Assembly (NCBI GenBank): GCA_977017575.1
Contig: CDRNVI010000040.1
Span: forward strand, 496,001 to 560,000
Length of the DNA stretch: 64,000 nt
Reading direction: 5' to 3'
From: Paramoeba atlantica
Taxonomy: Eukaryota > Protista > Discosea
Shown here: positions 1,658 through 54,633 of the stretch, one piece after another
Layout: each line of letters starts with the position of its first letter
Numbering within the stretch: the first letter of the stretch is position 1
The notes under the pieces: model-generated
Database searches by the model: none
The model's input: the letters and a program-made list of their open reading frames with translations, nothing else
What the model was told of the DNA's origin: nothing
Program-made: the position numbers and the translations under genes

Positions 1658-2764
1658 ATGAGCTACTCGTCTACCGAGTTACCTCCTTCGCAGACGTCTT
1701 GCACGGAATCCTACAATTGTTCTCCACCAAGTCTTGAACTGGATCATCAAAATATATCCCGCTCCAGACCTCGAAGGCAGCGTCGGTCGCGTTATTCTCG
1801 AATTCCTCTAACGGGGCAAGGAAAAGATACTCGTGAAGCCGCTCCCGCCAATGCGGAATCTTATCCACCAACACCTTATCTTACATCTTACGGCGAGCCT
1901 TTCGAAGATTTAATTTTTCAGCTGCAGCAGGCACAAGATCATGTCGCTCACTTGCAGCAATGCTGCATGGCCTACGAAGCCAAAATTCAGGACCTCGAAT
2001 ATTGCGCTCAACAATCTGCACGAGGTACGAATTCCGCGTCGTTTTCAACTGCTTGTATTTCTCACGCACGGATCGAACCTTCTTGCGAAGATTCGCAGGA
2101 CAAGATGTCTTTGTTCGGTAGGAAAATTAAAAATAACACAGTTTCATCTGTGCGACTTACCGAAACAGGTAATCACGATATAAAAAATAGCATACAGCGC
2201 ATGAAGAAATCTACTCTTGATGCTGCCACAGACGTACTTGGTCTCCCGCAAGCTGTCCCGTTAGAAGATCAAATGGTTTTTCACACCTTGGTTGACCTTG
2301 GAAATCTTCATCCTATCCAAATCAACCTTTATAAAAACGTCAGCCCCATGTTACAAACCCAAGACACCTACGCCCGAGCCATCTTCGAACACTGTGACGA
2401 TGTCTGCAACCTTCTTCCCACCTTGAAACCCAATTTTACCTTTGGTTATGAGGTCTCTCAATCCTGGTACAGCGCGGACGACTCCCTCTCCGAGGACAGT
2501 CTCGAGGACTTTGCATCCTTCTCCCTACGCGGCAGCGCACCGCCTGCCCACCCCTCACAGTTTCCCTCACAGTCGCCTTCCTCTGCGGCCGTGAGATCCC
2601 ACGTACGCAGAGTTCCCTCCACCCCTACTGGTTCCTCCGGGCACAGCTCTTTTCGCAGTGCCGTGACACGCCGACTGACACGCGGGCTCGAGGAGCGCGG
2701 GGGGAGGTTTGACACAAAGATACCCTCCCCGAGTATCTCCTTTCGTCGCGCGCATCATAAGTGA
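1658..2764 (+). CDS. hypothetical protein (short coiled coil, Ser/Arg/Pro-rich C-terminus)
   Basis: 368-aa ATG ORF on the same strand as all other genes; no family motif recognised. Confidence 0.6.
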   Translation: MSYSSTELPPSQTSCTESYNCSPPSLELDHQNISRSRPRRQRRSRYSRIPLTGQGKDTREAAPANAESYPPTPYLTSYGEPFEDLIFQLQQAQDHVAHLQQCCMAYEAKIQDLEYCAQQSARGTNSASFSTACISHARIEPSCEDSQDKMSLFGRKIKNNTVSSVRLTETGNHDIKNSIQRMKKSTLDAATDVLGLPQAVPLEDQMVFHTLVDLGNLHPIQINLYKNVSPMLQTQDTYARAIFEHCDDVCNLLPTLKPNFTFGYEVSQSWYSADDSLSEDSLEDFASFSLRGSAPPAHPSQFPSQSPSSAAVRSHVRRVPSTPTGSSGHSSFRSAVTRRLTRGLEERGGRFDTKIPSPSISFRRAHHK

Positions 2765-3430
2765 ACGAGATGGAGCCATGGATACGCTCCACGCGTGCGT
2801 GTTGGGGGGGGGGGGGGTAAAAAAGAGGTGACTTTGCTTTTTTTTCTTGGGAATGATACAAGGTGTGAAAAAGAATACAGGATTATCATGTTTTAAAGAC
2901 TTTTCTTTCTTCTGTATAAGGATGTTTGACTTTTTTGAAAAAGGTCACTTATCCTCAGTCATGTTTAAGAACGGAAGTTATGATTGTTGCTCAATATTAA
3001 GTCCAAAAATAACGTGGTAAAGTAACTCTAAATTCATTTTAATTAAATATCTAAGATTTACATGGACAATATGGTGAACTATATTGTTAAGCAAATTTAA
3101 AATTTGTAATGACAAGTAAAGTTAAAGACATTCTAATTTGTGATTTTAAATTAAGTTTGTAAATATGCTTCTCTGTGGAAAATAAGCGTCCTACTGGGAG
3201 TGCTTAAATTGTTTTCATTGGTCAACTTTCGTTGTCTTCAGTAGAATCTCTAACTCTAAGGTGTTTCTTGCAGGATAGATGTACATACACTCTAATTTTT
3301 TATGAACCCCTTCTTGCCGAATAGCATATTCAGAAAACACGTCGCGTGACCTTATTTTTTTTAAATGTCGTCTTAATTTACTGATCGATACAACATTTCT
3401 TTACATAAAACTATACGTTCCACACACAAA

Positions 3431-4498
3431 ATGATACATACACGGCGTCTTCGTTGTTTAACAGGGGAAGCATGGATCAAAAGTAAGCTTCCGGCGGTCA
3501 AATCGCCCCTAACAGTACGTCCAACCCAAGGGCTATCTTCGCTTGAGAAATATGAAAACTACACCCTTCAAGGCAAAGCGCGGAAGAGAGGGAAAATGTC
3601 GAAACAAAGCGGGAAAACTGCATCAGATGTAGAGGTAATTCAGAAATCTGAAGAAGATTCTCTTCACATTCACACTACTCCGATACGCATGAGAATGCGT
3701 GAGGTATACGAAATCACACCTCACGAAGCCCAACTCAGTGCAGTTTCCGCACATCAACGCGAGATGTATAAAGGAGTCGACGTGCGAGAGCCCTCAACAG
3801 TTTCAAAGTATGATGGAACGCGTCCAAAATCTCTTTCAATGCAAGATAAAGTACAAGCTGTGGCTGATTTTATGAGTGGCAACTTAGCATTTCAGGTCAT
3901 GAGTCCAGAGTGGGTCAAACTTTTCAATTTACAGCACCTGGAACTTGACGTAATTTACTTTCTATGGGTCCTGCACCTTCACCTAATCGCTCGCCGGGCA
4001 CTTTCCGTATCCGTGGATGACTGGTCGCGTCGCAGAGAGGTTATGCAAGAAATGCTTGAATCCATGCGAACCTCGTGGGAGCAAAGTTGTCAGAGTCTAA
4101 TGGGCCGTCCCCCCATGTTTAAAATCCGACATTTTATTCTGGATATGTACTACGTAGTCTCTTGTAATCTTGAGGAGGCCCTCTCCCATGAGGGGCCTGG
4201 GGCGGACCTTGCAGTGCTCAGTGTTCTCATGAGGTTGATGCCTTTGCCCCGGCCGGAAGACCTCTCTTTCTACACATACTACGCTCTTGTCCACTACATT
4301 CGCTTTCACATTGCGCTTTTGGACCGAACCCCTGATGAGGAAATTTACAAGGGCAATTTTCATTTTCTGAGTCCACTTGACCCCGTTATTACTAGGCCTT
4401 ACGAAGAGGTTCCGATGGATGATGTAATTCGGCGATGGAGTGCAGAGAACTGCGCGTCAAGCGCTTCCTCAGAAAACAATGATCGGAAGAAGTCGTAG
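3431..4498 (+). CDS. CBP3: Cbp3/UQCC1-like ubiquinol-cytochrome c chaperone
   Basis: FLWVLHLHLIARR ... YYVVSCNLEEAL ... DLAVLSVLMR ... YALVHYIRFHIALLD follows the Cbp3 pattern; basic N-terminal leader (MIHTRRLRCL). Confidence 0.65.
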   Translation: MIHTRRLRCLTGEAWIKSKLPAVKSPLTVRPTQGLSSLEKYENYTLQGKARKRGKMSKQSGKTASDVEVIQKSEEDSLHIHTTPIRMRMREVYEITPHEAQLSAVSAHQREMYKGVDVREPSTVSKYDGTRPKSLSMQDKVQAVADFMSGNLAFQVMSPEWVKLFNLQHLELDVIYFLWVLHLHLIARRALSVSVDDWSRRREVMQEMLESMRTSWEQSCQSLMGRPPMFKIRHFILDMYYVVSCNLEEALSHEGPGADLAVLSVLMRLMPLPRPEDLSFYTYYALVHYIRFHIALLDRTPDEEIYKGNFHFLSPLDPVITRPYEEVPMDDVIRRWSAENCASSASSENNDRKKS

Positions 4499-4770
4499 TG
4501 GATGAAACGCGTAACTTACGAAATTGATGGCCGACATTTTTTTCGTGTCCAAATTTTTTCATCTCTTGCTGTTAAATCTCAAACTTGTTTTCTGTAGGTC
4601 ATTTTGATATTTCTTATAACTTTTTTTTGCTGTATGGGCTTCCTAAAAAAATTAAAATTCACTACTTTAAATATAAGGAAAACGTTTCTTATGTTTTTTC
4701 GAGCAGTTGAGACCTTAGTATAAATCTTTCATGTTTCAAAACAAGTGTGGCGCTACCCCTACTGTCAAAA

Positions 4771-6516
4771 ATGGTTAGTGCTAAAGATTTTTCGCTGCTA
4801 CGACAGGCCATATCGAAACGGGATTGCGATGCTGCTCTATTGTATCTTCGAAACTGGCTCAGTTCCACATCGAAAGCGCCTTCAACTTTGGTTTCTGACA
4901 TGAAATTTGCCGAAGAAATCACTCTGAAAACAAAAAAGCGGGTAAAAGATCCTGCGCAAGAAGTAATGTTGCCTCCTTCATTAGTTTCAGCAGCCCTGCA
5001 TTTATGTACATCTACGAACCGATGGTCGGACGCCAGTTCATTGTTACAAGATCTACTAAGGGTACATGATTTTCAATGGAATTCCTCAATTTTAGCCAAG
5101 AGCATTACTATCTTATGTAGAAATAGCGCTTTCTCCGGGGGTAACTCCGGCTATTCGTCTTCAGAAAACGAGGAGAAAAAGGGATTATCTCGAGAAAATG
5201 CTTTACCGCACGTGAAAAATGAATCCTGCTTAAAAAACGTGTTAGCAATATTGAAGAAGGCCCATTTTGGAAGTCTTGGGGAGGGTTCTGCTATTCAAAG
5301 ACGGCATTTTGCTCCTTTTTTTGAAATTTGCAGCAGCTTTGCTTTGCTGAACGAGGCGCGTGCATTCGCACGAAAGGCTAGCGTTGTTTTGGATCAAGTA
5401 GACTACGCTTGCATGCTCAAACTTCCTTTTGCGGGTCAGTTGCTTCACGGCATTCTTCAAGATATGAGAGAAGACATCCCATTGGTTTCGCATGACTTTG
5501 TCGATGCCGTTTTCTACGCGTGTAGAGATTCTGAGCCTGACAAGAACATTAAGCCAAATGCATCCGAGTGCACCATACGAGATGAGGTGGAAGTGGTGTT
5601 TCCCGCAGCATATGAACAAAAAGATACCGATATCCTTTGTAGGAGGCCATCCGAACAACATTTCGGTTACTGTAGTCATTGCAAAGGCGAATTACAGTTA
5701 TATCCTTTCAGTGAGGAGTATCGTGCACAACTTCTGGGCGATATTGAGAAAACATTAATACCTGCAGAACTTCCTAATGAGGTCATTTCCAAACTCAGGA
5801 AAATGTGCGATGATCGGGTCATTCGAGTGATTATTGATGGTGCCAACGTAGGCTATTGCGGTCTCTCAGCTTGGGGTGCTGAATCGATTGAATCTCAAAA
5901 CTTTCGAGAGAAGGAAGAGAACGTGATTGAAAAAATTCAGGACGAAGATCGTAAGTGGAGAAAGCGCGCTGCAACAAAAAAGGTTCCTGCTCGATTGGAG
6001 CATATTCAAGCAGTGTGTGAGGCGATAGAAAATGCGAAGCTGGGAACTCCTCTTATTGTTTTTCACGAACGTCACACGGCCAAAGAGGCCCTTCAGCCCC
6101 AGTATCAGGAGATGGTACGCAATTGGCGTGAAAGGGGCATTTTATACACCTCGCCCGAGGGGGTTTGCGACGATTATTTTTGGCTCTATGCTGCTGTGTA
6201 CCTTAGCCAGCCGAGTCGTCCTGCATATGTGATTACTAATGATAAAATGAGAGATCACCACTACGCGATGCTTTCTCAAAAATCCTTTTTGAGATGGAAA
6301 CAGACGAGTCAAATCTTTTTTGGGATTTTAGCTCCTGGGATGAGAGCGCGGTTGCAAGTGCCTCGTTCGTACTCTTTTTGCATGCAATATGAGGAAAGCA
6401 ACAGGCATTGGCATCTACCGTACCGCGATCGAGTAGATGACCAAATAAGATGGTTATGCGTTGAAATACCACAGCAGACGAGTGATACAACAAAAAATGA
6501 CACACCCGCTGTGTAG
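4771..6516 (+). CDS. PRORP: protein-only RNase P (PPR region + NYN nuclease)
   Basis: CSHC zinc ligands, [31 protein letters not shown] and a C-terminal WHLP. First ATG is at 4771 (the track starts at GTG 4747). Confidence 0.92.
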
Positions 6517-6820
6517 GAATTTCTTAAAATCCTTGCACATCTGTTGCCCATTACGTTCCTCTAATCACTTTTTACTGATTATTACGTTGTTTGGTCTTTG
6601 TAGGCTTCCAATTTTGCGATCACATCATAGCAAAGTGAACATGTACAGTGCTTCGAGTACACTGCGAGTTTCTAGTACAATGAGATTCTATGCAGTTTTC
6701 AAAGCACTAAATCACACACAGTACTTGAAATATAAGTATCTCATACATCACAGTTTGAAAATCCTAAGTGCTCTTTTTCTTGTTTATCGGGGTGCTTACG
6801 TCAATGTAACTTCACAAAGA

Positions 6821-7888
6821 ATGGACGAACAAAGTAGAGAACCGGGGGTTGCCCTTATTACTGGGATATCGGGTCAGGATGGCTCCTACCTCGCCGAGCT
6901 TCTCCTCGAGAAAGGCTACACCGTCCATGGCCTTGTACGCCGCACCTCCACCTTTTCCACCTCCCGCATCAACCACATCTACACCCACCCCCGTCTCCAC
7001 CTCCACTACGGCGACCTCACCGACACCCTCCCCCTCCTCCACCTCATCACCTCCCTCCGCCCCACCGAGATCTACAACCTCGGCGCCCAGAGCCACGTCA
7101 AAGTCAGCTTCGACCTCCCCGAGCACACCGCCAACGTCAACGCCCTCGGCTGCCTCCGTCTCCTCGAGGCCCTCCGTCTCTCCCCCCTCCCCCCCGCCCA
7201 CTGCCGGTTCTACCAAGCCTCCACCTCCGAGCTCTACGGGCAACCCACCGAGAGCCCCCAAACCGAGTCCACCCCCTTCCGCCCCCGCTCCCCCTACGCC
7301 TGCGCGAAGCTCCACGCGTACTGGTCCACGGTCGTCCACCGCCACGCCTACGGGCTGTTCGCCTGCAACGGGGTTCTGTTCAACCACGAGTCCCCGCGCC
7401 GCGGGGCGACCTTTGTCACGCGCAAGATCGTCCGCGCCGCGGTGCGTATCGCCGCGGGGCGACAACACGAGCTGTGTCTGGGGAATCTGGACGCGAAAAG
7501 GGACTGGGGGCACGCGAAGGACTATGTGGAGGGGATGTGGCGGATGCTGCAGCAGGAGGGGCCGGGGGATTACGTACTCGCGACGGGGAGGCAGTACGCG
7601 GTGCGGGAGTTTTGTGTGGCGGTGTTTGAAAGGGTGGGGATAGGGCTGCGGTGGGAGGGGGAGGGGGTGGGTGAGGTGGGGGTGGAGACGGGGGGGACAG
7701 GGCGGGTACTGGTTCGGGTCACGGCGAAGTATTTTCGACCGGCTGAGGTGGATTCGCTTCTGGGTGATCCGTCTCATGCGGAGAAAACATTGGGCTGGAA
7801 GCGAAATTTCGATTTTTATGGTTTGGTTGACGATATGGTGTCGAGTGAGATTGCCATAGAGAAATCGGGTCAAGACTGTTGGTCTTAG
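6821..7888 (+). CDS. GMD: GDP-mannose 4,6-dehydratase
   Basis: [74 protein letters not shown] 6821 sits just before the Rossmann motif; the upstream part of the 6461 ORF overlaps PRORP and is probably not coding. Confidence 0.97.
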
Positions 7889-9141: not shown

Positions 9142-11028
9142 ATGGGACGGGAACGCGTCTTTCTTTTGAGTCCACACGGCACTTTTTGCGCCATTTTGGA
9201 GCACTTTGAGGACCCGGAAGAGTCGGATGAAATTCAAATAATCACTCCACAGGGAAAATTCTACGCTCCAGTGCGTCCTCCAGTGAGATTAAAAGGTCTT
9301 GTTCGAGACGATCTGCACAGTGCTTCTGATTCAACATCGAGTTGTATTTTTGCCCTTCCACAAGAAACGAAAAAGCGTTCAATATCAATTTCCAGAAAAA
9401 TCAGTACTGCAGCTTGGGATAGCGACTCGTCTCTTCTTGTGTGTTTCACTGATGCGAGCGTCTGGTCTTTGTTTTCGTCAAGTCTTGATAGGTTTGAGCA
9501 AGGGGCTGGCGATTATTACTTTCAATGGACAAAGGATCCGATACACACTTTAGAGGGCGGATCGCAGTTCGACGGAAATCTTTTTGTTTGTCAAATAGGA
9601 ATTGCACCAAGACTACGGAAACCATTGGGTAGTATTCCACCTTTTTCATACGTGGATACCAATTTTGCTCTCTGGTGGCATGATGGCAAGAAAGTACATG
9701 AGCTCCACAGTTCGCAAGCAGTTCCTATTACTCATATCGCTGCGAGTCCTAGTGGAAAGTTGGTCGCTATAGCTACAGAAAAATACATGCGAATATACAG
9801 TACCAGAAAACGCAAGAAAGTGTATTCTCTGAAATGGCGCAATAAATCTTTGATGGCCCGACTTTTCTCTCCCTTATCACTTCTTCACATGGTTGACGAC
9901 AGCCACCTCGCCCTGGGAACATTGGACGGTGAGGTTGCACTATGGAATACAAAGAGTTGCGAAACACCAAAGTTTATGTACAGTGGCTCCATGCGGTCCT
10001 TTTTGACGAGAAATGAGGCCCCGTGTGATTTGCCCTCACCTTCCTCTAATTTTCTTGTTGTTGCAAATGGTCGCTACTGCATGGTGGCTAAATTGGGGGA
10101 AGAAGCGCAAATACTTGATCTTGTTCTTCAGAAAGTAGAATCAGGACCAAGCTTACCCGACTCATTATTCGGCCTAAATGATAAAGTGCATTCTGAAAAG
10201 CCTTTTTTGCAGTGCAACAAAATTTCTCTTTTGAAAGACCAAAGCGGAATGTACTGGAACCCAAAATTTCACAGTATCGAATCTTTTTCCTGGGGAATTC
10301 TTCAGGAAACAAACTCTACGAATTTACTCACTGTTTCCGAGACTCCGTCCAATAAACTATCGGATGTCGCCTCTTTTGCGTCTACGGGGCTTCATATCTC
10401 AAATGTCTTTACCGATACAGTTGAGTACAAAGACATAAAAGAAGATTTGAGCCAACTATTACGGGAAGAAAGCGGAGAGTCCATGTCTTTGGAGTGCCTT
10501 TCCGCAACAGCACCGGAACCTATGGATATTTCTTCGGTAAAAAGGCTATTTAGCCTGATTCACCTCAATCGTGGTCAATTGTTTCGTGAGCAGAATCTTC
10601 GCGCTCTATCTCTGTTCGAGTCCATTCGTGTTGCTCGGGCTTCTACCCGCATAGCGACGATATCTTGGGTTCATTTCATTCGATCAGTACTTTGGCTCAG
10701 AGCCCTCCTTCACGCTCGTCCTGTGATGTCATCTCACCACTCTACAAAAATACTTGAAAGAACAAGCGCGGTGCTTTCTCTGAGTAAGCAAGTTACATGC
10801 GCCAGCATAGCAAGCTCCCTACGACGTTCGCAAGGGCTGTTGGACATTTTTGGGGTCACACGACCTAATTCTGTTTCTTATGAAGACATTGCATGTTCTT
10901 CATTCATAAAGAAAGCGATCACGATGAGCAATGACGCTTCGAATAATTCCAGAAAAGCAGTTATGTCAGAAACTACTTTTCACTCCTCTCCAATATCTGC
11001 AATGAAAAGGAGGCGTAGGAAGAGCTAA
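9142..11028 (+). CDS. WD40-like beta-propeller protein with basic C-terminal tail
   Basis: PITHIAASPSGKLVAIAT and HLALGTLDGEVALWN blades; ends MKRRRRKS (NLS-like). Confidence 0.65.
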   Translation: MGRERVFLLSPHGTFCAILEHFEDPEESDEIQIITPQGKFYAPVRPPVRLKGLVRDDLHSASDSTSSCIFALPQETKKRSISISRKISTAAWDSDSSLLVCFTDASVWSLFSSSLDRFEQGAGDYYFQWTKDPIHTLEGGSQFDGNLFVCQIGIAPRLRKPLGSIPPFSYVDTNFALWWHDGKKVHELHSSQAVPITHIAASPSGKLVAIATEKYMRIYSTRKRKKVYSLKWRNKSLMARLFSPLSLLHMVDDSHLALGTLDGEVALWNTKSCETPKFMYSGSMRSFLTRNEAPCDLPSPSSNFLVVANGRYCMVAKLGEEAQILDLVLQKVESGPSLPDSLFGLNDKVHSEKPFLQCNKISLLKDQSGMYWNPKFHSIESFSWGILQETNSTNLLTVSETPSNKLSDVASFASTGLHISNVFTDTVEYKDIKEDLSQLLREESGESMSLECLSATAPEPMDISSVKRLFSLIHLNRGQLFREQNLRALSLFESIRVARASTRIATISWVHFIRSVLWLRALLHARPVMSSHHSTKILERTSAVLSLSKQVTCASIASSLRRSQGLLDIFGVTRPNSVSYEDIACSSFIKKAITMSNDASNNSRKAVMSETTFHSSPISAMKRRRRKS

Positions 11029-11406
11029 TCAGGCGTATAATTAGTTTCCCTTTTACTCCGCATAAGAGTATTAAAATCAATATATTGCCAAATGGTGGGT
11101 CCTGTTGGGTTTTCTAATGTGCGAAATATTTATTTAGTAAATTTGGGCCCTAAAATTTGAACCTGGAAGTAGTTGCTGAAAGTGAAAATACTGCTATCTA
11201 GTGAACAGTCAAATTAGTGAACAGACTAATTGATTTATTTTTATTAGAAAATGGTGTATCTCTTGAACGAAGTTATAACAATACAATATTTATGCTAGAG
11301 ACGTTACATAGTGAACTTTTCGGTCTTCACAACTCTATTAAGAATTTTCTACTTTTACCCGATTAGATCTATCGTCTCTTACAAAGACTTTATAACTTAG
11401 GCTGCC

Positions 11407-32619: not shown

Positions 32620-32651
32620 TTATCAGTACAGGTGAAGCGCCACTTTAATTG

Positions 32652-44891: not shown

Positions 44892-46415
44892 ATGGAAAAA
44901 TCACTTATTGATGTTAAATATTTAAAGGACATAACCATTCGCGGAGCGCGAGCTCTGTCCTGTGGCGTCAGCGGGGAACGCTTGATATCTCTTTGTTCAA
45001 CTCGGCGTGAAGAGTTTCAAACCATCACTAACTTTATTCGTAGTTGTCATGAACTACGTCGCACAGAATTTTTTCTTGTTAGCGGTACTCCTGGAGTAGG
45101 AAAAACATTTTTGCTTCGCCAGGTCATGACGACCCTCGAGCGCGAGGGTATTGTTCATCCAGTCTATATCAATTGCTTCGAAATAGATAACCCCAAGAGC
45201 ATTGCAAACGAAATACTACATGAAATACAACACACTTATAGTCGTGCTAGAGCTGATTCACGTAAAAGAATGACGCGCGTTCCCTCAACGAAATCTGCCG
45301 CTACTCGACACGCTTCAGATACCCTTGAGCGGCTGTGCGAAAGTGGTTGGGACGGAATACGATCTCCATCAGATAGCAGGTTGATCCTACTTGTTCTTGA
45401 TGAAATCGACAGGTTAATTGTCTCTCAGGAGCGTACGAGAACAGTCTTTCAATTGCTCGACCTGTTACGCTACCCTCTCAGCAATCTCTGTATATTTGGT
45501 ATCTCAAATCAAATTGGTATACCTGCGTTGTATGAGTCAAAAATGTTGTCACGTGTCTCGGGACAATGCATCATACGCTCCTACACAGAGGAGGAATTGG
45601 TTCGATTGATTAAGCAACGTCTCCACGTTTTTGATGCAGAAATCGTTTTACAGAAAGAAACAGACGCAGACTGTGGGACCCTCTATCCTTTATTTGCTCC
45701 AATCGCTCTTCAGGTTCTAATGCGGAAATGCGGGGGTACGCAAGGGGATGCTCGTAGAGTACTTCACGCTTGCGAGCACGTACTGCTTCGATTATTCGGA
45801 GAGCGTGATGCCGTATGGAAAAGTTTGTCTAAACAAGCTTGTAGTGTTCAGATTGATCCAAAACTTCTACAAAATCCAAGAACTGGACTTATTAGTCCTG
45901 AATATACAATGCTGGTCGCGCATGAATTGGTACCCAGCCAGTATCCAGAGCTACGCAACTTACCTTTTCTTGCACATATCGTGCTTGCTGTGTTTTGGAA
46001 TGCACAAAAGGTGCAAGGCTGTGCGGAATCCGTGCAACATCGTACCTCCACGCAAAATACGAATCTAGGAAACTATATTGCCCCAGAAGTCCCAGTCGCG
46101 CTCTCATCCGACATAATTATGGATGTTGTATGGTGCATGTCCCGACGACTTGAGGTGATCGAAGAAATGCATTCGCAAAATTGTGAAGGGGATTCGATTT
46201 CTAACCTCGCGCAGAGAATGCGCAATTTTGCTGGCATACAAATAGTACTACAGTCACTTGTCGATTTGCATATTCTACAACAGCTTCGAACTCCTGATGG
46301 TTTTGAATCTAGGGCCTCATTTCGTCTACTCACACCTGCGGCACAGGTGGAGCGAGTGCTGCATGAAGCTCAAAGCTCGGCTTACCCTTTTTTAAAACAT
46401 TTAGCACCAGAGTGA
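44892..46415 (+). CDS. ORC1/CDC6-family AAA+ ATPase
   Basis: REEEF, SGTPGVGKT, VYINC, LVLDEIDRL, FGISN, YTEEELVRLIKQRL, GDARRVLHAC. Confidence 0.85.
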   Translation: MEKSLIDVKYLKDITIRGARALSCGVSGERLISLCSTRREEFQTITNFIRSCHELRRTEFFLVSGTPGVGKTFLLRQVMTTLEREGIVHPVYINCFEIDNPKSIANEILHEIQHTYSRARADSRKRMTRVPSTKSAATRHASDTLERLCESGWDGIRSPSDSRLILLVLDEIDRLIVSQERTRTVFQLLDLLRYPLSNLCIFGISNQIGIPALYESKMLSRVSGQCIIRSYTEEELVRLIKQRLHVFDAEIVLQKETDADCGTLYPLFAPIALQVLMRKCGGTQGDARRVLHACEHVLLRLFGERDAVWKSLSKQACSVQIDPKLLQNPRTGLISPEYTMLVAHELVPSQYPELRNLPFLAHIVLAVFWNAQKVQGCAESVQHRTSTQNTNLGNYIAPEVPVALSSDIIMDVVWCMSRRLEVIEEMHSQNCEGDSISNLAQRMRNFAGIQIVLQSLVDLHILQQLRTPDGFESRASFRLLTPAAQVERVLHEAQSSAYPFLKHLAPE

Positions 46416-46586
46416 AAGCACGTTTTTTCAATGTTTACGAATCTCTTTGTTCAAAAAAGAAAAATTAGTCAAAAAAGTTGAATAATGTTTTTGCATAAAT
46501 TAACTACAGCAGCTTTTTTCTGTGTAAAGAGAATTAATTTTAGAACACTGTTTTAGAAAAAAGTGGTCTCTGTTTGAAACAATTTT

Positions 46587-47357
46587 ATGTATGAAAATAT
46601 ACTCCGGATCCTCCAGGCGAACTTGCAATACGGAAACAGTGATGCGACCGACGCGTTGTTAAGCCTGCAGACCATAACTGGGAACGAGCGTTTTTGGTTT
46701 GAATTCATCGAATGTTCTACATTGGCACCGCTTCTTGCCGCTTATGTATGCAAAAAGGCCGTGTTACGATGTGAGCAATCGGAATTATCTCAAGGTCAAG
46801 ATACGTCAAACCACCTTGAAATAGCCACCCTCCATGCAGCATTGGAATTTCTGCAGGACGTTCTTCCTTTTGCGCTCTTGACGTTGAAGGGGCGCACGCG
46901 GTCTTCTCTGTCACGACTATGTAAGCTCGTAACACAAGCGACGCCACACCAGGAGAGTTCGCATGTGGGTGACGTCGCTGCGGAATGTGCTCATATTCGG
47001 GGTCTTTGTGATGATATCACCCAGGCCTGTAGAGAGGACTACGGGGCCGCACTCCCCATTCTCCCCTCTTCGTGTCTGACAAGCACCCCGCTTTGTGTGC
47101 AGCAGTACAATAATTTCAACGATATCCCAGGGGAGCAGCAAACTACCCCAACGTGTGGTCCGATGGGACACCACCCCTCCCGTCGAGGGCTCACGGCACC
47201 GTTTTCTCCCCGGGAGGACGAAACGATACGCACAGGGGTGCGACTTTTCGGGCACAGGTACCGGCAAATATACGACGCCAATCAGGGCGTGTGGGCTCCT
47301 GGGAGATCTCCAGATCAAATCGAATATCGGTGGAAGCATTTGAAAACGCTTCTGTGA
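46587..47357 (+). CDS. TRF: telomere repeat-binding factor-like protein (C-terminal Myb)
   Basis: C-terminal PFSPREDETIRTGVRLFGHRYRQIY...GRSPDQIEYRWKHL after a helical N-terminal domain, as in kinetoplastid TRF. Confidence 0.7.
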   Translation: MYENILRILQANLQYGNSDATDALLSLQTITGNERFWFEFIECSTLAPLLAAYVCKKAVLRCEQSELSQGQDTSNHLEIATLHAALEFLQDVLPFALLTLKGRTRSSLSRLCKLVTQATPHQESSHVGDVAAECAHIRGLCDDITQACREDYGAALPILPSSCLTSTPLCVQQYNNFNDIPGEQQTTPTCGPMGHHPSRRGLTAPFSPREDETIRTGVRLFGHRYRQIYDANQGVWAPGRSPDQIEYRWKHLKTLL

Positions 47358-47547
47358 AATCGAAAAAAATGTTTTATCCTTTGTAAATTAGTAATATTCC
47401 TATGAAGGTCAAAATTATTAGGATATTTGTTCAGTATTTTCTTTTGCCTTACTTGATAAGTGTGGGGTAGGCTTTCATGGGCTACACAATGATTTTACAT
47501 GTATCTTCTCTTAATTATAGCAATACCCACCTAGTGTTTTCCTTTTA

Positions 47548-48714
47548 ATGCACTCCTCCCGACTTCTTTCCGCGTTACAGACCTATGCCACGCTTCCCCC
47601 CTCGGATGTCTTCCCCCTCCCCCTCGTAAAGTGGGCCCAGCGACACAACTGTAACTTCTCCTCCGGCTTGCGACAGGCCTATGTCACCCTGGGCTACGCC
47701 GCCGCCGTAGACCCCAGCATTGACCCCCCTGAGTCACAAAACAACACCCCCGGCGATGCTACAACCGGGTCCTCTCCTCCACCCCCCCTCCCCCTCTTCT
47801 CCCCCACTCTCCTTCGTGCCGTCCAGGAATCCAACTACCAACTCGCACACTGCTCCGACTGGGTAGAACACATCGCCGTGACCCAATTCGAATACGCTCA
47901 TCGAATACCCCATCCCCCCGTGGCCGTGACGCACCCCTCTACATTGGAAACAGAAAAACAAGAACAAAACGAAAAAGAACAAAAACAAGAACAAGAAGAA
48001 CAAAAACAAAAAGAACAAAAACAAAAAGAACAAGAACAAAAAGAACAAGAACAAAAGCAAGAAGAACAAAAGGAACAAGAACCCTCCACCCCTTCCACCC
48101 CCCCTATGAACCCCTCCCCTACGTGGACCGCCATCCCCTCCTCTGAGGTCGACACGGGAAAATTCGACATCCCGATTCACCCCACCAATGCCTCTTCCCC
48201 CCTCTTCCCCTCCTCCATACCCCCCAGCGGGCAGCACGACCCCACCGGTCCCCTCCTCTCCCTCCGCATCCGTGCCGTGCTCACGGTACGGGTCAACCCC
48301 GCACGGTTCCTCCCGCACTACCGCTGGTGTCACCAACGGATTCACGTCCCCGAGGGGGGGGCGATCGGGGGGGCTGTCGCGGGGACAGAGCCCGGCAGCG
48401 TCGGGGAGGGGGAGAGCTCTGTGCCGTTACGGCACCAGGCCGCGACCTATGCCGCGACCCGCCCCTGGGCGCGGGGGTTGTTAAAGGTGTTTCGCTCGGT
48501 GACGTTGGATCCGGTGATGCGGACCATGGTGCCGTATGTTCCGGCGAAGATGACCGTGATGGAGATGTGTCTGGGTCCGGTGGGGAGAGGGGAGAGGGGG
48601 GGTCCGTCGTGTGCGGTGGGTGCGGAAATGAATTGGAGAGTGACGGCTCTTAGGCATGCGGAGGAGGTGGCGTATCCGGTTTGGGTACAGCGGAGTAAGC
48701 AGGAGGGTTTGTAG
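47548..48714 (+). CDS. hypothetical protein with an E/Q/K low-complexity insert
   Basis: 388-aa ATG ORF; caa/gaa/aaa repeat at about 47950-48080; spans a C-to-G island. Confidence 0.6.
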   Translation: MHSSRLLSALQTYATLPPSDVFPLPLVKWAQRHNCNFSSGLRQAYVTLGYAAAVDPSIDPPESQNNTPGDATTGSSPPPPLPLFSPTLLRAVQESNYQLAHCSDWVEHIAVTQFEYAHRIPHPPVAVTHPSTLETEKQEQNEKEQKQEQEEQKQKEQKQKEQEQKEQEQKQEEQKEQEPSTPSTPPMNPSPTWTAIPSSEVDTGKFDIPIHPTNASSPLFPSSIPPSGQHDPTGPLLSLRIRAVLTVRVNPARFLPHYRWCHQRIHVPEGGAIGGAVAGTEPGSVGEGESSVPLRHQAATYAATRPWARGLLKVFRSVTLDPVMRTMVPYVPAKMTVMEMCLGPVGRGERGGPSCAVGAEMNWRVTALRHAEEVAYPVWVQRSKQEGL

Positions 48715-48933
48715 TCCGAGGTTTGTAGTCCGGGTGTGTTCGTTGGGGTTAGTATAGTAATTGTAGCACTTGTAGCATTGTTCAATTTTGGCAAATAATG
48801 TGGAAGGTAAACATGACAAGGGTGTGGGAATGTAGACATCGGGTTCACTAAAACGATTCAGAATAGTCTATGGGAAACTAATCGCTGGTAGTCTTTTTAC
48901 CTTCTAACATCCTTGTTTCCAAAATTTATCCGT

Positions 48934-49620
48934 ATGAACCGAGATCAGATTAAAGCGCTAAAATTGAAAGCGCAACAAGAAGCAGCGTGTCCAGATTCGG
49001 ATGCTAAAAGCGGCAGAAATCATATTGAGCACGCCGCAAAAATGCGTCAACGTGCATTGAAACAGAAAAAGAAGGAGGAAGAGGTCGCAAGGGGAAATGA
49101 GAAAGCACGTCAGGCGGAGGAACAGAAGCGCCAATTTTTGGATGCGTTAGAAGACAAAACCGCGGAAAGCTCTGCCGATTCTCTTGAAGCACTTAAACAA
49201 TCGGTAGAACAACTTGATATCAAACAAAAGGAAGCACAGCAACGCGCCCAAAATCACGCTCTAAAACTTGAGGAAGATGCCTTACAGGCGGAGCGTGAAC
49301 GAGTGTTGAATATGAGTAGCGATGAACGCGATGCGTACCTACGTGGTCTGGAAACTAAAATACACCAAACACAAAGCGTAATTGCTGAAAAACAACAGTC
49401 ACAAAAAAACATGGAGAACTCGGTAGAAACTCGACGGCACGAACCCAGGAAAAAAGAAAAAGCAACGAAGCCCAATAATGTGTTGCCTTCTTTTCTCCAC
49501 GAGGCGGAAGAGGCCGACTTTGATCATGAAAATGAAAACTACAAGTCGGGGACACCCGCTGACCTTCTGCTTATTCACAAAAATACGAAGGCACTTAGAA
49601 AATCGGGTGAAATCTTGTAG
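48934..49620 (+). CDS. coiled-coil hypothetical protein
   Basis: ATG at 48934; K/E/Q/A-rich helical composition. Confidence 0.65.
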   Translation: MNRDQIKALKLKAQQEAACPDSDAKSGRNHIEHAAKMRQRALKQKKKEEEVARGNEKARQAEEQKRQFLDALEDKTAESSADSLEALKQSVEQLDIKQKEAQQRAQNHALKLEEDALQAERERVLNMSSDERDAYLRGLETKIHQTQSVIAEKQQSQKNMENSVETRRHEPRKKEKATKPNNVLPSFLHEAEEADFDHENENYKSGTPADLLLIHKNTKALRKSGEIL

Positions 49621-49848
49621 CCTGCTAAATCTGCTACATCCGAGTTTCCAGTTGGGCATTCACATTTTTTTGAGATAAAAAGCGTCACTTAATGTGGATG
49701 GTGAGCTAGTTACTCATATGTTTACAAAACTCATATGTTTCCTCATATGTATCACCTTTGTTTTTAAACCTTGGTATACGAAACCGTAATACAACTTCCT
49801 ACATCATCTTGCCATTTTTCACACACCTCATACCTTTACACCTCCCCT

Positions 49849-50904
49849 ATGTTCAGCGTTCGTCCCCTGGTCTCTCGAAACTTGAGAGATCTTTGCAACA
49901 TCGTAAGCACAGACGATTACGTCATCTCTTTGCTCAACAAGTCCAAGCTACGTTCCTTTGCGGAGTTTATCTCCTGGCCCGGGGCGGGGGCGAGAGAGAT
50001 TTACCGATACGTGCTTACCCTCCCAAAAGAGCAGCGTGCCCTACACGCGGTCTTTGGACGAGAGGGGGTTCCGTTGGACTTTTGTGCTGATCTCGACCTT
50101 CCGTTGTCTCCGTCAGATCCGCATGCGCAGCAACAAGGACAGCTTCTTATGGAGGCCACCTGCGACGAAACAGAGCGTACGCTGCAACTCGCCTACGGGA
50201 AGCAATTCTCGAAACTGGTCGTCCTGCAGAGTTTCGCCGTGAACAAACTTTCCTATCACATACATGCCCGGATCGCAGAGGATGTGGCATTCCAGGACAT
50301 CTCGGATTTGTGCAATTTCTCTCGCATTGTGGCGCGTTCCCTCAAGCTACGCTGGAAGAAGGAAGTTCTTGATTCCGGAATTTACCGTACTGGGGGACAG
50401 CTGCGGTTGTACGACTGTGTAAAGAGTATTGGTGATGACGCCACTCTGGACAAGCTTGCGTTGAAGAGACCACTACACTGGAATCCCTGCCCCGACGACC
50501 TTTTTGAGCTCTCCTTAGTCACCCGCCCGCGTTCTGTTGTGCGCGAGCTAATCACGTCCAAGTCCACAGCCCCGGTCGTTAAAATGGAAGATAGCTACGA
50601 TAACTGTATGGATTTTGTAATTAAGACTGTCCCTCGGCTGGAAGAATCCGTAGCACACGCTTACAGTTCTTGGATTCAAATCGGGCTGGCACTGAAAAGT
50701 TTGCACCTGGTTGCACAGTCAAGACCCGATGGGGTGTTATTCGATTTTGAGGATCTTTTTCACACGTTTAGTGCAAAGTCGCCGAAGTACTCACGCGGAG
50801 ATTGTGATAGACAGTGGGCCAGAATGAAAGTGAGGGATGCTGACTGGTTGCGAGCTGTACGGTGTGTTCGGCGATTTTGTAAGAAAAATGTTGACATGCC
50901 ATGA
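49849..50904 (+). CDS. AEP primase with a C-terminal PriCT-2 domain (kinetoplastid mitochondrial primase PRI1/PRI2-like)
   Basis: DFCADLDL (DxD), SYHIH, DSGIYRTGGQLRL; C-terminal YSSWIQIGLAL...FSAKSPKY...CDRQW; presequence-like MFSVRPLVSR. Confidence 0.8.
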   Translation: MFSVRPLVSRNLRDLCNIVSTDDYVISLLNKSKLRSFAEFISWPGAGAREIYRYVLTLPKEQRALHAVFGREGVPLDFCADLDLPLSPSDPHAQQQGQLLMEATCDETERTLQLAYGKQFSKLVVLQSFAVNKLSYHIHARIAEDVAFQDISDLCNFSRIVARSLKLRWKKEVLDSGIYRTGGQLRLYDCVKSIGDDATLDKLALKRPLHWNPCPDDLFELSLVTRPRSVVRELITSKSTAPVVKMEDSYDNCMDFVIKTVPRLEESVAHAYSSWIQIGLALKSLHLVAQSRPDGVLFDFEDLFHTFSAKSPKYSRGDCDRQWARMKVRDADWLRAVRCVRRFCKKNVDMP

Positions 50905-51218
50905 CGTAGGTTTATGGCTTTCAATTCCGTACCTTCAGTCTTCTGTTTTTCAGAACAACTTCACACTTTTAGAAATTTTTCATTTTTCACAAATTTAATT
51001 TAGAACGCAACGTTCAATCACGTTTCGTATCCTTCAGTTTCTGTTATTCCTATGGTCTCTCAACACATCACCTAACTCACTAAAAAACATTTACTGTCAT
51101 AAAAACATTCATTTCTTTGAAGTAGTCTACGAGATGTACATCTTTCTACTTCTGCAACACGTGCACCACCTATTCGCCAAAATACAAAACCACTCGTTTA
51201 TTCTCCTCACCCCCATTT

Positions 51219-52898
51219 ATGTCTTCCCACTGCCTCATCCTTGAGCGACCCAAACCCGGAGCAGACCTCCATCACGTCCTGTTCGTCGACCTCGACAACG
51301 TTGCCTTCTTTCGCGGTGTAGACGAGCGGTTCAGCACCCCCCGTCCCATCGTGCCCCCTCGTAGCTTTGTGTTCTGTATCGTCGCCGCGGACACCATGCT
51401 AAACGTCGCCATTGGCAAGAGTCCGGGCTACTTCCACCTTGTCCAGCGTCACGGTATCGAGATCTGTCCCCTCGGGAGCTGGCGTCCCCCGTTCGTTCTT
51501 CCCCCCGGGGAGGCCAGCAACACCATGAGCCCTTGCCAGGCCCTGCAGCGTCTCGTGCGCTGGGCCCACACCGTGCTGGACCCCGCGATCTCGTTCACCC
51601 TGCTGTACTTCCCGGAGGATAGCGCCTCCGAGACCTCACTGCAGGACTATCTCCAGGGAAGGGACGTGGAGACGATACGACCAGCTCGACACCACTGGTG
51701 GGATCGCGTCGCCTCCCGGCTGGCACGCCGTAAGCCACAGCCCCCTAAGGTGAAGACATCGGAACCATCTCCTCGTAGAGAAGGTGAGGAGGAGGCAGAA
51801 TCAGGGGTTGAAAATCCGATTGAGAACAGGGAGCGGATAGAACCGAGCGCACTCACGGAGGAGGCGTTGCGGTCATGGGGTATTGGAATGGCAGAGCCGG
51901 AGCTGAACGGTGATGCGGGAGAGGGGAAGGAGAAAGGAGAACTTTTTCGGCAGGAAAGTAGGAAGGTGGAAGATAGATGTATCTTAGATACATCTGAGGT
52001 GGTGAAGGAGAGAAGTTTTTCTGTCGAGCCAACATGTGACATTGAGGTGCCGAAGACAGCGGGGGACAAGTTGAGTACCACAGAGCGTCCGACTGTGCTG
52101 GAGCCCGTAAAACAAGTACCTGAACGTGCTTTACCTCCTACAGAGGATGTGGCGACCACGAATACAAAGGATCCGCACATTGCGGAGACTTCTTCGCACC
52201 GAAAACCGTACCGCGAGGTGCCAAAACGAAGCAAAAAGAAAGTAAAGGAACCAGTTCCTGTGGAGTCCTACAACCCCGTAACTTCGCTCCTTCTTAACAT
52301 GAGTGAACCGGAGACATCTCGATCCAGAAAGCGTCGGCAACACCCCGAACTCGCCACGATGGACTCTTTTCGGGCCAACGACATGTTCCCCTCGGAGCAG
52401 CGTGATCTCTCTCCAATAGAAAAGGGTACGACTCAGGAGATACATCCAGGGCCTATAGATAAACATTCTTCACCACAGTACCAGGGGCGTGATGCTCTGC
52501 GTTCTTCTACACATCATCCTCATGCGCACCAACATCGACATCGGCATCACCACCACCATCATCATCATCATGAACGCAGAAGTCATCATACAAGGGAGCA
52601 ATGTCCCACTCACGACCATCCTATTCAATCCAAAGAACATAAAGGTTTTCCTGCGAGAGATGCAGAACGGCACAGAGACGCACGGAAACACAGAGCCCAT
52701 ACCCATAACGAGTCTGATTCTGACTCGCTTAGCAGCGCAGAGGCTTCCGACATGAGTTCTGACTTTAGTTCCTCAGCTTCTCGGCAATCCTCGCTTTCCC
52801 GATCACTTAGTTCACTTAGCTCGGATTTGACAGCTTCTTCGATCTGTTCGAATTCCCTTCGCACCAAATTGATCGCGGCGACAAAGAAAAAATACTAG
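51219..52898 (+). CDS. N-terminal PIN-like (ZNF451-type) domain with a long disordered, His- and Ser-rich tail
   Basis: HVLFVDLDNVAFF motif near the N-terminus; HQHRHRHHHHHHHHE tract; poly-Ser C-terminus. Confidence 0.6.
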   Translation: MSSHCLILERPKPGADLHHVLFVDLDNVAFFRGVDERFSTPRPIVPPRSFVFCIVAADTMLNVAIGKSPGYFHLVQRHGIEICPLGSWRPPFVLPPGEASNTMSPCQALQRLVRWAHTVLDPAISFTLLYFPEDSASETSLQDYLQGRDVETIRPARHHWWDRVASRLARRKPQPPKVKTSEPSPRREGEEEAESGVENPIENRERIEPSALTEEALRSWGIGMAEPELNGDAGEGKEKGELFRQESRKVEDRCILDTSEVVKERSFSVEPTCDIEVPKTAGDKLSTTERPTVLEPVKQVPERALPPTEDVATTNTKDPHIAETSSHRKPYREVPKRSKKKVKEPVPVESYNPVTSLLLNMSEPETSRSRKRRQHPELATMDSFRANDMFPSEQRDLSPIEKGTTQEIHPGPIDKHSSPQYQGRDALRSSTHHPHAHQHRHRHHHHHHHHHERRSHHTREQCPTHDHPIQSKEHKGFPARDAERHRDARKHRAHTHNESDSDSLSSAEASDMSSDFSSSASRQSSLSRSLSSLSSDLTASSICSNSLRTKLIAATKKKY

Positions 52899-53275
52899 AC
52901 GTTCTGAATGGCGTGACAGACTTTTAGGTACGGAGGTTGTTTCGTACACTGTTTGTCAAGAAGTTTTGTCATCTAGCTCAAGAGAGAGGGAGATCTACGT
53001 CTTCTCAGTTTTCCTACAAACTAAATCTATTTTTGAACGCAAAAATTATCTGTGCTTTAGTAGTCCAAGCTTATAGCTCCATATGGTGCCCTATTTTTAC
53101 TAAGTTTTGGCATATTGACTAACATTATACATTATCTATTTCCTTTCCTTGAATAGAGAAGACCATTTCTTGAATGTTTAATTCTTTCTCCTTCACAAAA
53201 TAAAGGTTTATTAAACAAATTTAAATATACCAATTTCATTTTTTCGCTCCCCTCCGCCCTCCTCCCCCCCTCCCC

Positions 53276-54376
53276 ATGCATCGTACCTTCTTCCGCTTCC
53301 TCTACCGCTTCACCCCACCCCATCTCCGAGACCCCAACCCTTTACCATCCAGTTACCCACACGCCCTTGCCCTCCTTCCCCACTCCCCCTCACCCTCCCC
53401 TACCCCCTCCTCCCCTTCCCCCACACAACCCTCCCCCACCCCCTCCTTACCCTCATCCTCCTCCCCCTCCTCTACCGCCTTCACCTTATCCCACCCCTCT
53501 CCCACCCCCACCACCACCACGGATTCCACTCTCCCCGTTGTTTCTGTCCCCTCCAACGCCTTCATCCTACAAGATCCTCCACAACACAAACCCGAACACA
53601 ACCCTCAACACAACCCCCAGCACAATCTCCAACACAACCCCCAACCCAGCACGCAACACAATCTCCAACACAGAGCACAACACAACTCCCAACACAGTAC
53701 GCAACACACCCCCCAACACAGATCCCAGCACAGCAGGCAACACAACCCCCAGCACAGTCCCCAACACAAATCCCAACACAACCCTCAACGGACAACACAG
53801 CACCGTTCACAACGAAGCACACAACACAGTCCCCCACACCACTCCCCACTGAGCACCCAACACAGTCCCCAACACAGTCCCCCACACAGTCCCCCACACA
53901 ACCTACAGCATCGTCCCCCCCACAGCTCCCCCCACAGCCCCGACCCCTCCCCCCTCGACGCGCTCCCCCTCCCCCTCTCCCCGGCCTCCCAGGCCCAGGT
54001 CGCCCGCCTGGTCGCGGCGTACCGCGTGTTCTGGGACCACATCCGGTTCCGCAAGGCCTGGGCCGTCCCCCCCTTCACCTACGACGAGGTGCAGCCCGAG
54101 CTCTCCCGTGCCGCGGAGTACGTGGTGCGGGTCCGGCGGTACCTCGACGGGGTGAGCCCCGGGATGAAGATGCGTATGCTCGACGGGGCCGCGCAGGGGT
54201 TCCTGCGCTCCCGGCGAAGGGAGCAGGTGGTGGGGGACCGGGGGGGGTTTGTACGGGGGTTGGTCCACCACACGTTAAGGGACGCCACGGGGTATGTGGA
54301 GGGGCTGAGTGAGGGGGTGGTGGAGGGGTTGCTGAGGAGGGTGAGGGAGGGGGAGGGGGGGAGAGGGGAGGGGTAG
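53276..54376 (+). CDS. hypothetical protein with Pro/Ser and QH(N/S)P low-complexity repeats, presequence-like N-terminus
   Basis: MHRTFFRFLYRF leader; about 25 QHxP-like tetrapeptides; ordered C-terminal block ARLVAAYRVFWDHIRFRKAW... Confidence 0.6.
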   Translation: MHRTFFRFLYRFTPPHLRDPNPLPSSYPHALALLPHSPSPSPTPSSPSPTQPSPTPSLPSSSSPSSTAFTLSHPSPTPTTTTDSTLPVVSVPSNAFILQDPPQHKPEHNPQHNPQHNLQHNPQPSTQHNLQHRAQHNSQHSTQHTPQHRSQHSRQHNPQHSPQHKSQHNPQRTTQHRSQRSTQHSPPHHSPLSTQHSPQHSPPHSPPHNLQHRPPHSSPHSPDPSPLDALPLPLSPASQAQVARLVAAYRVFWDHIRFRKAWAVPPFTYDEVQPELSRAAEYVVRVRRYLDGVSPGMKMRMLDGAAQGFLRSRRREQVVGDRGGFVRGLVHHTLRDATGYVEGLSEGVVEGLLRRVREGEGGRGEG

Positions 54377-54633
54377 AGGGGGGGTGGCTGGCTTGCGGGT
54401 GTATGGTGGAAAGAAATAGAGTGTAGGAGGGAAAGAATAGAAACGGATTTTTTATAGGGTATTTATGGTAGGATAAGTTTTACTTTGAAGAATGACCCAT
54501 TTTAGCATTTTTAATGTTCTAGTTTTCTTGTACGCTTACTTGCTTCTTTTCCAGTATTATCACGCCGCATTTTTCTTTATACGCTCACAAAATATATTCG
54601 AGTACTTCACACTCGTATCCCTTTTTGTTTGTG

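Follow-up and report, generated by a model that had tools for sequence, protein, structure and literature searches.

Gene-bounded islands with C-to-G strand polarity in a one-way gene array of a prokinetoplastid

We analysed a stretch of 64,000 nucleotides (nt) (the window; positions 496,001 to 560,000 of contig CDRNVI010000040.1, in assembly GCA_977017575.1, filed under Paramoeba atlantica) in which short GC-rich islands are laid over ordinary genes. Each island runs from C-rich to G-rich on the reference strand, the change is a linear ramp from one border to the other, and the borders, not the centres, coincide with the ends of coding sequences. The reading we favour, to which we give a probability of about 0.4, is that the islands are a lineage-specific, strand-polar footprint of mutation or biased fixation over ordinary genes, left by a repair process that would work inward from the borders. 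On this best reading the island sequence is not selected for protein or RNA function. The window has a GC content of 43.8% and about 35 open reading frames (ORFs), all on the plus strand in a one-way array, and their products are ordinary eukaryotic housekeeping proteins.

Islands were detected with a log-odds segmenter for C-rich and G-rich runs and, as a second detector, with a switch score using 300-nt arms. Both recovered all six of the GC-rich islands listed in a first-pass annotation of the window, and the segmenter agreed with its coordinates to within ~60 nt. In every island a C-rich segment directly abutted or overlapped a G-rich one, and 20 shuffles of the sequence gave zero such segments with the segmenter. 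The C-then-G order noted in that annotation held without a reversal, the G-to-C signals of the switch score being side lobes at island edges only. The 32 kb of the same contig to the left of the window contained three further C-to-G islands, one in a RuvB-like gene and one across a whole small gene, and a tenth, weaker island, at the 5' end of a dihydrouridine synthase gene, came from a different contig of this sample. No reversed (G-then-C) pair occurred among the islands found, nine of nine having the same polarity (sign test, P ~0.002). Over the genome sequence examined, ~117 kb in total, the islands have a density of about one per 10 kb with irregular spacing (2.4–29 kb) and affect about one gene in six (~10 of ~65).

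The direction of the compositional drive was read from codon-class tallies pooled across islands, with leave-one-out classification of the arms. At fourfold sites the C fraction was 0.19 in the background, 0.69 in C arms and 0.13 in G arms, and the G fraction 0.21, 0.09 and 0.73, respectively. Two-fold pyrimidine-ending codons had a C fraction of 0.38 in the background, 0.82 in C arms and 0.41 in G arms; for two-fold purine-ending codons the G fraction was 0.40, 0.46 and 0.91. Since each arm favours only one of the two complementary transitions at two-fold codons, the other being unfavoured, the drive is strand-specific and is not a general AT-to-GC pressure. The same test ruled out ordinary GC-biased conversion, as the weak-to-strong preference irrespective of strand that it entails was not seen. 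In the C arms A, G and T were each reduced to about one third to two fifths of background, and this even depletion fits a base-independent insertion of C better than a process limited to transitions. The AT skew was close to zero (−0.02 in C arms, +0.01 in G arms), so that what had been described as an amino-to-keto switch, from C(+A)-rich to G(+T)-rich, is a pure C-to-G change. The impression of C+A richness arose because A-rich coding repeats lie in C arms. These low-complexity repeats, with units of a Glu/Gln/Lys type or of the CAACACAA type, are found inside the C arms of three whole-gene islands (47940–48081, 53560–53900 and, left of the window, ~−14750 to −14600).

The drive affected both synonymous and non-synonymous sites and extended into the untranslated flanks. 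Within single genes the choice among synonymous codons shifted from NNC to NNG. The gene for GDP-mannose 4,6-dehydratase (island 2) had a third-position C fraction of 0.80–0.93 early, which fell to 0.03, while G rose from 0 to 0.80, against a background of 0.20 for C and 0.21 for G. Each island is a box of 0.3–1.2 kb with a GC content of ~65%. In a meta-profile of the islands, GC content formed a plateau at 0.61–0.69 and dropped to ~0.40 within one bin outside, and G/(G+C) ramped linearly from 0.21 to 0.80 across the whole island (r = 0.98), with its extremes at the borders and no step in the middle. The flip within ~100 bp proposed in the first-pass annotation did not survive this analysis. 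Seen from the nearer border, the strand that runs into the island in the 5' to 3' direction gains C at the expense of all three other bases, and its complement gains G; two opposed gradients of this kind overlap within the box, and the ramp is linear because they overlap. At the island centres there was no shared motif, common 6- to 9-mers being no more frequent than in shuffles. Observed/expected CpG was 0.6–1.1 in islands and 0.9–1.1 in background genes; CpG is not depleted, and the two sets offer no contrast in it. G-quadruplex motifs were nearly confined to the islands and lay on the outward-running strand (minus strand upstream, plus strand downstream). A signature of homopolymer extension was rejected, run lengths being just slightly above the expectation from composition.

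The islands are also closely tied to genes. Eight of nine had an edge at most 70 nt from a start or stop codon, and all nine had one at most 165 nt away; in 5000 trials of random placement the means were 1.3 and 2.9 islands, respectively, and neither observed figure was ever reached. Seven islands begin near a start codon, from 161 nt upstream of it to 62 nt downstream, five stop within ~70 nt of a stop codon, three cover a whole small gene and a fourth nearly all of one, and none of the nine is internal to a long gene. Borders at gene ends were sharp, and free intragenic borders faded over ~200 nt. Left untranslated flanks within islands were pyrimidine-rich and right ones purine-rich. The facing ends of the neighbour genes were at background, with G/(G+C) of 0.41–0.61 and the skew returning to background within ~100–200 nt, which ruled out two-sided breaks in the spacers. 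A general gradient from C to G at third positions in all genes of the organism was likewise ruled out, as it was absent from 34 of its non-island genes. The borders at coding-sequence ends, and not the centres, are therefore the fixed landmarks. Several claims of the earlier annotation were upheld by these data: the islands do start or end in intergenic DNA and fade inside genes, they are positional and do not follow gene origin or codon usage (the NNC-to-NNG change takes place inside single conserved genes and includes untranslated flanks), and their footprint is very local, sparing the neighbouring genes.

Individually, the six islands of the window differ in strength and extent. The weakest, island 1 (2482–2818), has a C arm at 2482–2683 followed by a mixed stretch that ends in a run of 14 G (2804–2817), and is anchored at the 3' end of the ORF at 1658–2764, its right edge lying 54 nt beyond the stop codon. 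Island 2 (6883–7751; C arm 6883–7440, G arm 7396–7751) covers nearly all of the dehydratase gene (6821–7888, plus strand), whose product matches Pfam PF16363 at 9e-135. Island 3 (36649–37235; C arm 36649–36875, G arm 36795–37235) begins 20 nt upstream of the ATG of the succinyl-CoA ligase beta gene (36669–37895, plus strand) and its right edge fades gradually within that gene. Island 4 (47551–48748) has two C arms (47551–47939 and 48082–48351), separated by an A-rich coding repeat, and a G arm (48352–48748); it covers the entire ORF at 47548–48714 (plus strand, no known domain). Island 5, of moderate strength (51203–51969; C arm 51203–51745, G arm 51778–51969), begins 16 nt upstream of the ATG of the ORF at 51219–52898 (plus strand) and has a gradual, intragenic right edge. 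The strongest, island 6 (53245–54431; C arm 53245–54114, G arm 54108–54431), covers the entire ORF at 53276–54376 (plus strand) together with 31 nt before the ATG and 55 nt beyond the stop codon, and its GC skew goes from −0.89 to +0.81. A lone G-rich segment at 22663–22848 (G 0.53, GC 0.69), in a gene-poor, repeat-bearing stretch, has no C partner, and its membership in the island family is uncertain; two more lone G-rich segments lie left of the window, at ~−18900 and ~−7950 in window coordinates. Long antisense ORFs over islands (minus strand; 6812–7873, 36483–36989, 47734–48345 and 51647–52234) are by-products of GC richness. A prokaryotic gene caller, applied to the public contig, gave wrong-strand or truncated genes at islands; of the dehydratase, for example, 114 amino acids were called.

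The position of the borders bears directly on the idea, put forward in the first-pass annotation, that a sharp switch point marks a fixed replication origin or start site. The ramp, the lack of a centre motif and the landmarks at the outer borders do not agree with it, and skew does not persist along a replicon or transcript but is at background directly outside the box. What stands is the polarity, which is that of bidirectional origins and divergent promoters. With a zone replacing the point, the same idea would make each island a bounded zone of bidirectional initiation. Synthesis, either replication or divergent transcription accompanied by RNA:DNA hybrids, would start anywhere in the island and proceed outward, and the exposed strand gaining G would be the displaced strand or the lagging-strand template. 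RNA:DNA hybrid tracts are ~1 kb long, the same size as the islands, and uniform initiation predicts a linear ramp with constant total effect, exactly as seen. The G-quadruplex motifs, nearly restricted to islands and on the outward-running strand, also speak for such zones, and co-transcriptional cleavage at the polyadenylation site could provide a hard stop at the right border. The C-to-G polarity is shared with bacterial origins, with the asymmetries associated with human CpG islands (PMC2817419) and with divergent promoters. Yet forks and RNA polymerase would pass the borders, and the skew is gone within ~100–200 nt with the neighbours unaffected; there is no coupled A/T skew, unlike in replication or transcription asymmetries elsewhere, the centres have no common motif and the spacing is irregular. 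The zones would moreover have to lie within genes' coding parts and, without exception, stop at a gene boundary, and the left arms would require antisense transcription within a one-way array. In Trypanosoma brucei the mapped origins are intergenic and have the opposite arrangement of G-quadruplex strands (PMC13179062). The trypanosomatid comparison drawn in the earlier annotation is not supported, the organism being a prokinetoplastid (see below). We regard initiation zones as less likely than not, but as the main rival to the reading we favour.

The effect of the islands extends to the proteins. C arms encode 14% Pro, compared with 4.6% in the background, and G arms encode ~12% each of Gly, Val and Glu. 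In the dehydratase we looked at conserved positions, defined as conserved in at least seven of nine orthologues. In its C arm these were replaced, in this lineage, by residues encoded by CTC, CCC, CAC and ACC (three Tyr-to-His changes, Leu-CTC for Ile or Met, Pro for Val or Gly), and in its G arm by residues encoded by GGG, GCG and AGG (Gly-GGG for Lys or Asp, Ala-GCG for Ser or Pro). A high-scoring dehydratase match, P0001, was set aside as irrelevant, being a bacterial protein with an internal duplication. Succinyl-CoA ligase beta was 39–45% identical to its orthologues in the island part and 58–63% outside, and is thus ~20 points more diverged within the island; among prokinetoplastid orthologues the ratio of identity between the two parts is ~0.9–1.0, both halves diverging alike. 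The replacement of conserved residues and the divergence of the ligase together suggest that the force behind the islands is non-adaptive in character and strong enough to override protein constraint.

Several comparisons point to the organism behind the window. RFC2 was 46% identical to that of Perkinsela sp. CCAP 1560/4, 46–50% to those of its relatives on Mb-scale contigs and 38–45% to those of trypanosomatids and Bodo; the adjacency of Pex10 and RFC2 is common to the window and to Perkinsela-group genomes; and the top matches of succinyl-CoA ligase beta were Papus and the Perkinsela group. These three observations make the organism a prokinetoplastid related to Perkinsela, not a trypanosomatid. 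No island was found in 63 kb from three Perkinsela-group genomes, syntenic region included, nor in the syntenic succinyl-CoA ligase beta of a Perkinsela-like species (locus L012). The sample of the window itself holds a second succinyl-CoA ligase beta gene (locus L011, 10001–11275; ERZ24900291 ctg3990l), without an island, which stands in the Perkinsela-type order (RPL26, SpoU methylase, ligase, GIY-YIG) and is ~60% identical to the window copy (36669–37895), whose context is different; the two genes appear to be either a pair of paralogues or the genes of two organisms. On these comparisons the islands seem to be lineage-specific. Positional conservation among relatives, which the first-pass annotation had wanted compared, is absent as far as the ligase orthologues go; the divergence (~60% protein identity) is too deep for dating the islands. 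A GC-richer Perkinsela-like species (locus L006, ERZ25071330) had a weak trend from C-ending to G-ending codons along genes (11 of 15, P = 0.026; for example 10001–11089, 11845–13398 and 15556–19044), which could be the same bias in a more diffuse form. The literature searches turned up no description of comparable islands, either in Perkinsela or in any other kinetoplastid.

These data also bear on whether the composition itself is what is selected, be it for quadruplexes, for protein binding sites, for a long-range stem between the 5' and 3' parts of the mRNA or for a special codon usage. The concentration of quadruplex motifs in the islands would agree with this, a preference for C on one strand would lead to the same equilibrium as a mutation bias, and C-rich and G-rich arms could pair through composition alone. 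Pairing beyond that level was not found: in four of five islands the arms were no more complementary than codon-shuffled arms (shared 7-mers and longest matches, P 0.07–0.86), island 2 being marginal (P 0.05 and 0.03), and with it included the ranges are 0.05–0.5 for 7-mers and 0.03–0.86 for the longest match. This result, together with the colinearity with orthologues, ruled out an inverted repeat, a foldback or a selected hairpin. Furthermore, conserved enzyme residues are lost, untranslated flanks and unrelated genes are covered, and the feature is absent from the Perkinsela-like ligase beta genes, from the second ligase beta of the sample and from the 63 kb of Perkinsela-group sequence. 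Translational selection, finally, cannot give a shift of the preferred synonymous codon that depends on position. Selection on composition is therefore improbable in our view, decidedly more so than initiation zones.

A 62.5-kb contig of an ENA metagenome assembly (ctg3918l of ERZ24900291) contains the same DNA. It overlaps window positions 1–23442 at 99.83% identity and reaches 39 kb further left; the comparison of the two assemblies thus covers islands 1 and 2. Island 2 was identical base for base, and island 1 was also present, with three single-nucleotide polymorphisms (SNPs) and a different length of the G run. There were 19 SNPs in all, every one of them in window 1–5000, and zero across the following 18 kb, which looks like two haplotypes with a loss-of-heterozygosity tract. 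The 17 indels were mostly single-base and in homopolymer runs, chiefly at 15.2–23.4 kb; one of them, at 17989, alters the C-terminus of RFC2 (412 compared with 438 amino acids). At least one of the assemblies must contain errors, given these homopolymer indels, and this is what can be said for a technical origin of the islands, whether as assembly chimeras, as base-calling errors at modified bases or, as a foreign variant, as patches from a GC-rich genome. We consider any of these scarcely credible. Chimeras, which the first-pass annotation had named as what would undo its proposal, do not agree with the identity of island 2 in the second assembly, nor with the fact that ORFs run unbroken through the islands, with full-length Pfam matches and colinear homology. 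One ORF passes from AT-rich sequence through an island into AT-rich sequence again, and the changes respect the genetic code (third position far above first and second; two-fold purine-ending codons untouched in C arms). Genes from a GC-rich donor would lack the C-to-G ramp.

A possible mechanism is suggested by the strand on which G accumulates. The G-rich strand, whose 3' end lies toward the nearer border, would be the one that is recurrently single-stranded, and lost or damaged bases on this exposed strand would be bypassed by a C-inserting polymerase, either a Rev1-type deoxycytidyl transferase or an equivalent bias. That Rev1-type bypass inserts C opposite lost or damaged bases is established biochemistry. 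Such insertion would yield, in one step, the change of any base to G on the exposed strand, the GC enrichment and the pure G/C skew. The geometry that fits best would be 5'-to-3' excision or resection proceeding inward from both borders of a gene-sized segment; the borders would be its starting points and the 'switch' the mere crossing of two gradients. In humans, the single strand resected at meiotic break hotspots carries C>G and A>G changes in excess, asymmetrically between the strands, and these are attributed to translesion synthesis (PMC7615360); it is because of this signature that we read the G-rich strands (bottom at left, top at right) as 3' overhangs, the tails of a segment that would be resected from its two ends, and not as the flanks of a central break. 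A single central break with single-strand mutagenesis of the human type was in fact ruled out, since it predicts G at left and C at right, the reverse of what was observed. As the unaffected neighbours exclude two-sided breaks in the spacers, two geometries remain: paired strand-specific nicks at the two ends of the gene, with inward excision, or free linear DNA of gene length, for example complementary DNA (cDNA), which would be resected at both ends and then convert the chromosomal copy.

Breaks could also be placed inside the island, in recombination hot zones with strand-asymmetric biased gene conversion. The heteroduplex would pair the old 3'-ended strand with a newly copied one, and base-excision repair specific for T:G, acting on top of nick-directed mismatch repair, would fix C on the old strand. 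Island size is that of conversion tracts, amino acids change as they do with GC-biased conversion in gerbils (PMC7403616), and the SNPs restricted to window 1–5000 suggest two haplotypes with loss-of-heterozygosity tracts. A bias toward one transition per arm is what a fixed heteroduplex geometry predicts, and the scheme would yield the observed polarity. A transition-only process should nevertheless deplete T far more than A in the C arms, and A, G and T were depleted alike with an AT skew of ~0. Taken with a central break, the human-hotspot asymmetry gives the polarity in reverse, and the abutment on gene ends and the sharp borders are left unexplained. We therefore judge asymmetric conversion to be rather improbable, though not to the degree that applies to selection on composition.

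Repair from the borders inward, which we prefer, has difficulties of its own, and the following points weigh against it. The nicks, ends, cDNA and Rev1-like enzyme are all things we infer for this organism. The choice of only ~10 of ~65 genes is unexplained by this mechanism, and ribosomal-protein genes, presumably highly expressed, are without islands, which disfavours the cDNA variant. Left borders lie 12–85 nt downstream of a candidate splice-acceptor AG, not exactly at it. The partial islands anchored at 5' ends require diffuse internal right-hand ends for the G arm. The equilibrium composition expected from mutation bias would equally follow from a bias in fixation or from one-strand selection for G, and the only three SNPs within an island (island 1) are too few for a polarised mutation spectrum.

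Of the wider interpretations, it is possible, but on balance doubtful, that the islands represent a previously undescribed hypermutation or conversion system bounded by gene units in an early-branching kinetoplastid, or else the first compositional markers of internal, gene-bounded zones of transcription or replication initiation in polycistronic arrays. In the former case, segments with ends at transcript boundaries, possibly cDNA, would be resected, filled by a C-inserting polymerase and copied back, so that C would gradually accumulate on the inward-running strand and G on the complementary one, with the protein sequences dragged along.

The genes around the islands that could be named include those for PRORP, GDP-mannose 4,6-dehydratase, PIF1 helicase, Pex10 and RFC2, for diphthamide synthase, the TFIIH subunits Tfb2 and Tfb4, a tRNA-type deaminase, a Cas1p-type acyltransferase and succinyl-CoA ligase beta, and for an ORC1/Cdc6-like ATPase, a Myb protein, a PrimPol-like protein and a thioredoxin-glutaredoxin protein. 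The ORC1/Cdc6-like, Myb-domain and PrimPol-like genes (44892–50904) adjoin the densest cluster of islands (47.5–54.4 kb); a link to the islands is not shown. The one-way array is broken by a gene-poor stretch at ~19–25 kb, which holds dispersed and tandem repeats and within which the ENA contig terminates. A dispersed repeat family has copies that are 66–93% identical at 14916–15333, 19422–19577, 20224–20290, 21173–21406 and 22894–22947, and a 21-nt tandem repeat lies at 19627–19708. Neither this stretch nor the rest of the window has an Rfam match or a tRNA, and structural RNA genes were thus ruled out as the source of the GC peaks.

Where and how DNA and RNA synthesis start inside the long one-way arrays of kinetoplastids is a long-standing question, and the islands are discrete landmarks, readable in the sequence, that are tied to gene boundaries and have a defined strand polarity. 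The process behind them operates on individual genes, in a genome believed to lack gene-level units of DNA metabolism. They also provide an extreme natural example of composition-driven protein change, about one fifth of the conserved residues in core enzymes being altered, and a natural system in which base-independent insertion of C on exposed strands could be studied. For annotation, they matter because gene callers mishandle island genes, which come out truncated or on the wrong strand. Strand-compositional islands as such are of a known kind; there is a real chance that the underlying process is new.

Skewed promoters that form RNA:DNA hybrids are known in vertebrates, and the islands resemble them in being ~1 kb long and GC-rich (0.61–0.69 compared with 0.40), with a G-rich outward-running strand in both arms. 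As with the skewed CpG-island promoters and asymmetries of vertebrates (PMC2817419), they lie in an AT-richer genome, at gene 5' ends and with the same C/G polarity. Unlike CpG-island promoters, they are situated in the coding sequence of a one-way polycistronic array, and their skew is far stronger (to ±0.9), changes linearly, is most extreme at the borders and has neither an A/T component nor a long tail; CpG is depleted in neither, and as it is also ~1 in the background of the window it is not a distinctive feature. In bacterial oriC and human skew domains, as in the islands, the reference strand passes from an excess of C to one of G; origin jumps, however, are abrupt, coupled to a T>A skew and replicon-wide, whereas the islands are gradual, pure in G/C and confined to a box of at most 1.2 kb. 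Trypanosomatid start regions for RNA polymerase II are several kb long, G+T-rich and located at array boundaries; the islands, in contrast, have no excess of T, do not exceed 1.2 kb and lie inside a one-way array. The origins of T. brucei mapped by stranded nascent-strand sequencing likewise belong to a kinetoplastid with one-way arrays and have strand-specific G-rich or quadruplex motifs flanking the centre, but they are intergenic, with the opposite strand arrangement of these motifs, and the islands are in coding sequence (PMC13179062). At human meiotic break hotspots (PMC7615360) the asymmetry also reverses at a fixed point and the 3' tail gains G over hundreds of bases, as in the islands; the polarity is nonetheless opposite for a central break, the islands resembling a segment between two ends, and here the composition is saturated. 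GC-biased conversion, as in gerbil genes (PMC7403616) and in the gradients of third-position GC content (GC3) of grasses (PMC2895627), which are 5'-anchored, shares with the islands a local GC3 near 1 and amino-acid change against constraint. The islands are indeed tract-sized GC peaks that drive non-synonymous change, but such conversion favours G and C on both strands, whereas each island arm shows only one of the complementary changes; it is this pure, strand-specific G/C signature that separates the islands both from GC-biased conversion and from replication and transcription skews. In kataegis and in single-strand hypermutation of yeast, strand-coordinated mutations arise on exposed strands near DNA ends, including Rev1-type insertion of C opposite lost bases. 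Those clusters are somatic or experimental and contain few mutations, whereas the islands are fixed, saturated, evolutionary and recurrent in position. The islands thus fail defining features of each of these systems. In polarity they come closest to skewed CpG-island promoters and origin asymmetries, in signature to resection-tract mutagenesis, and in what they do to proteins to runaway GC-biased conversion.

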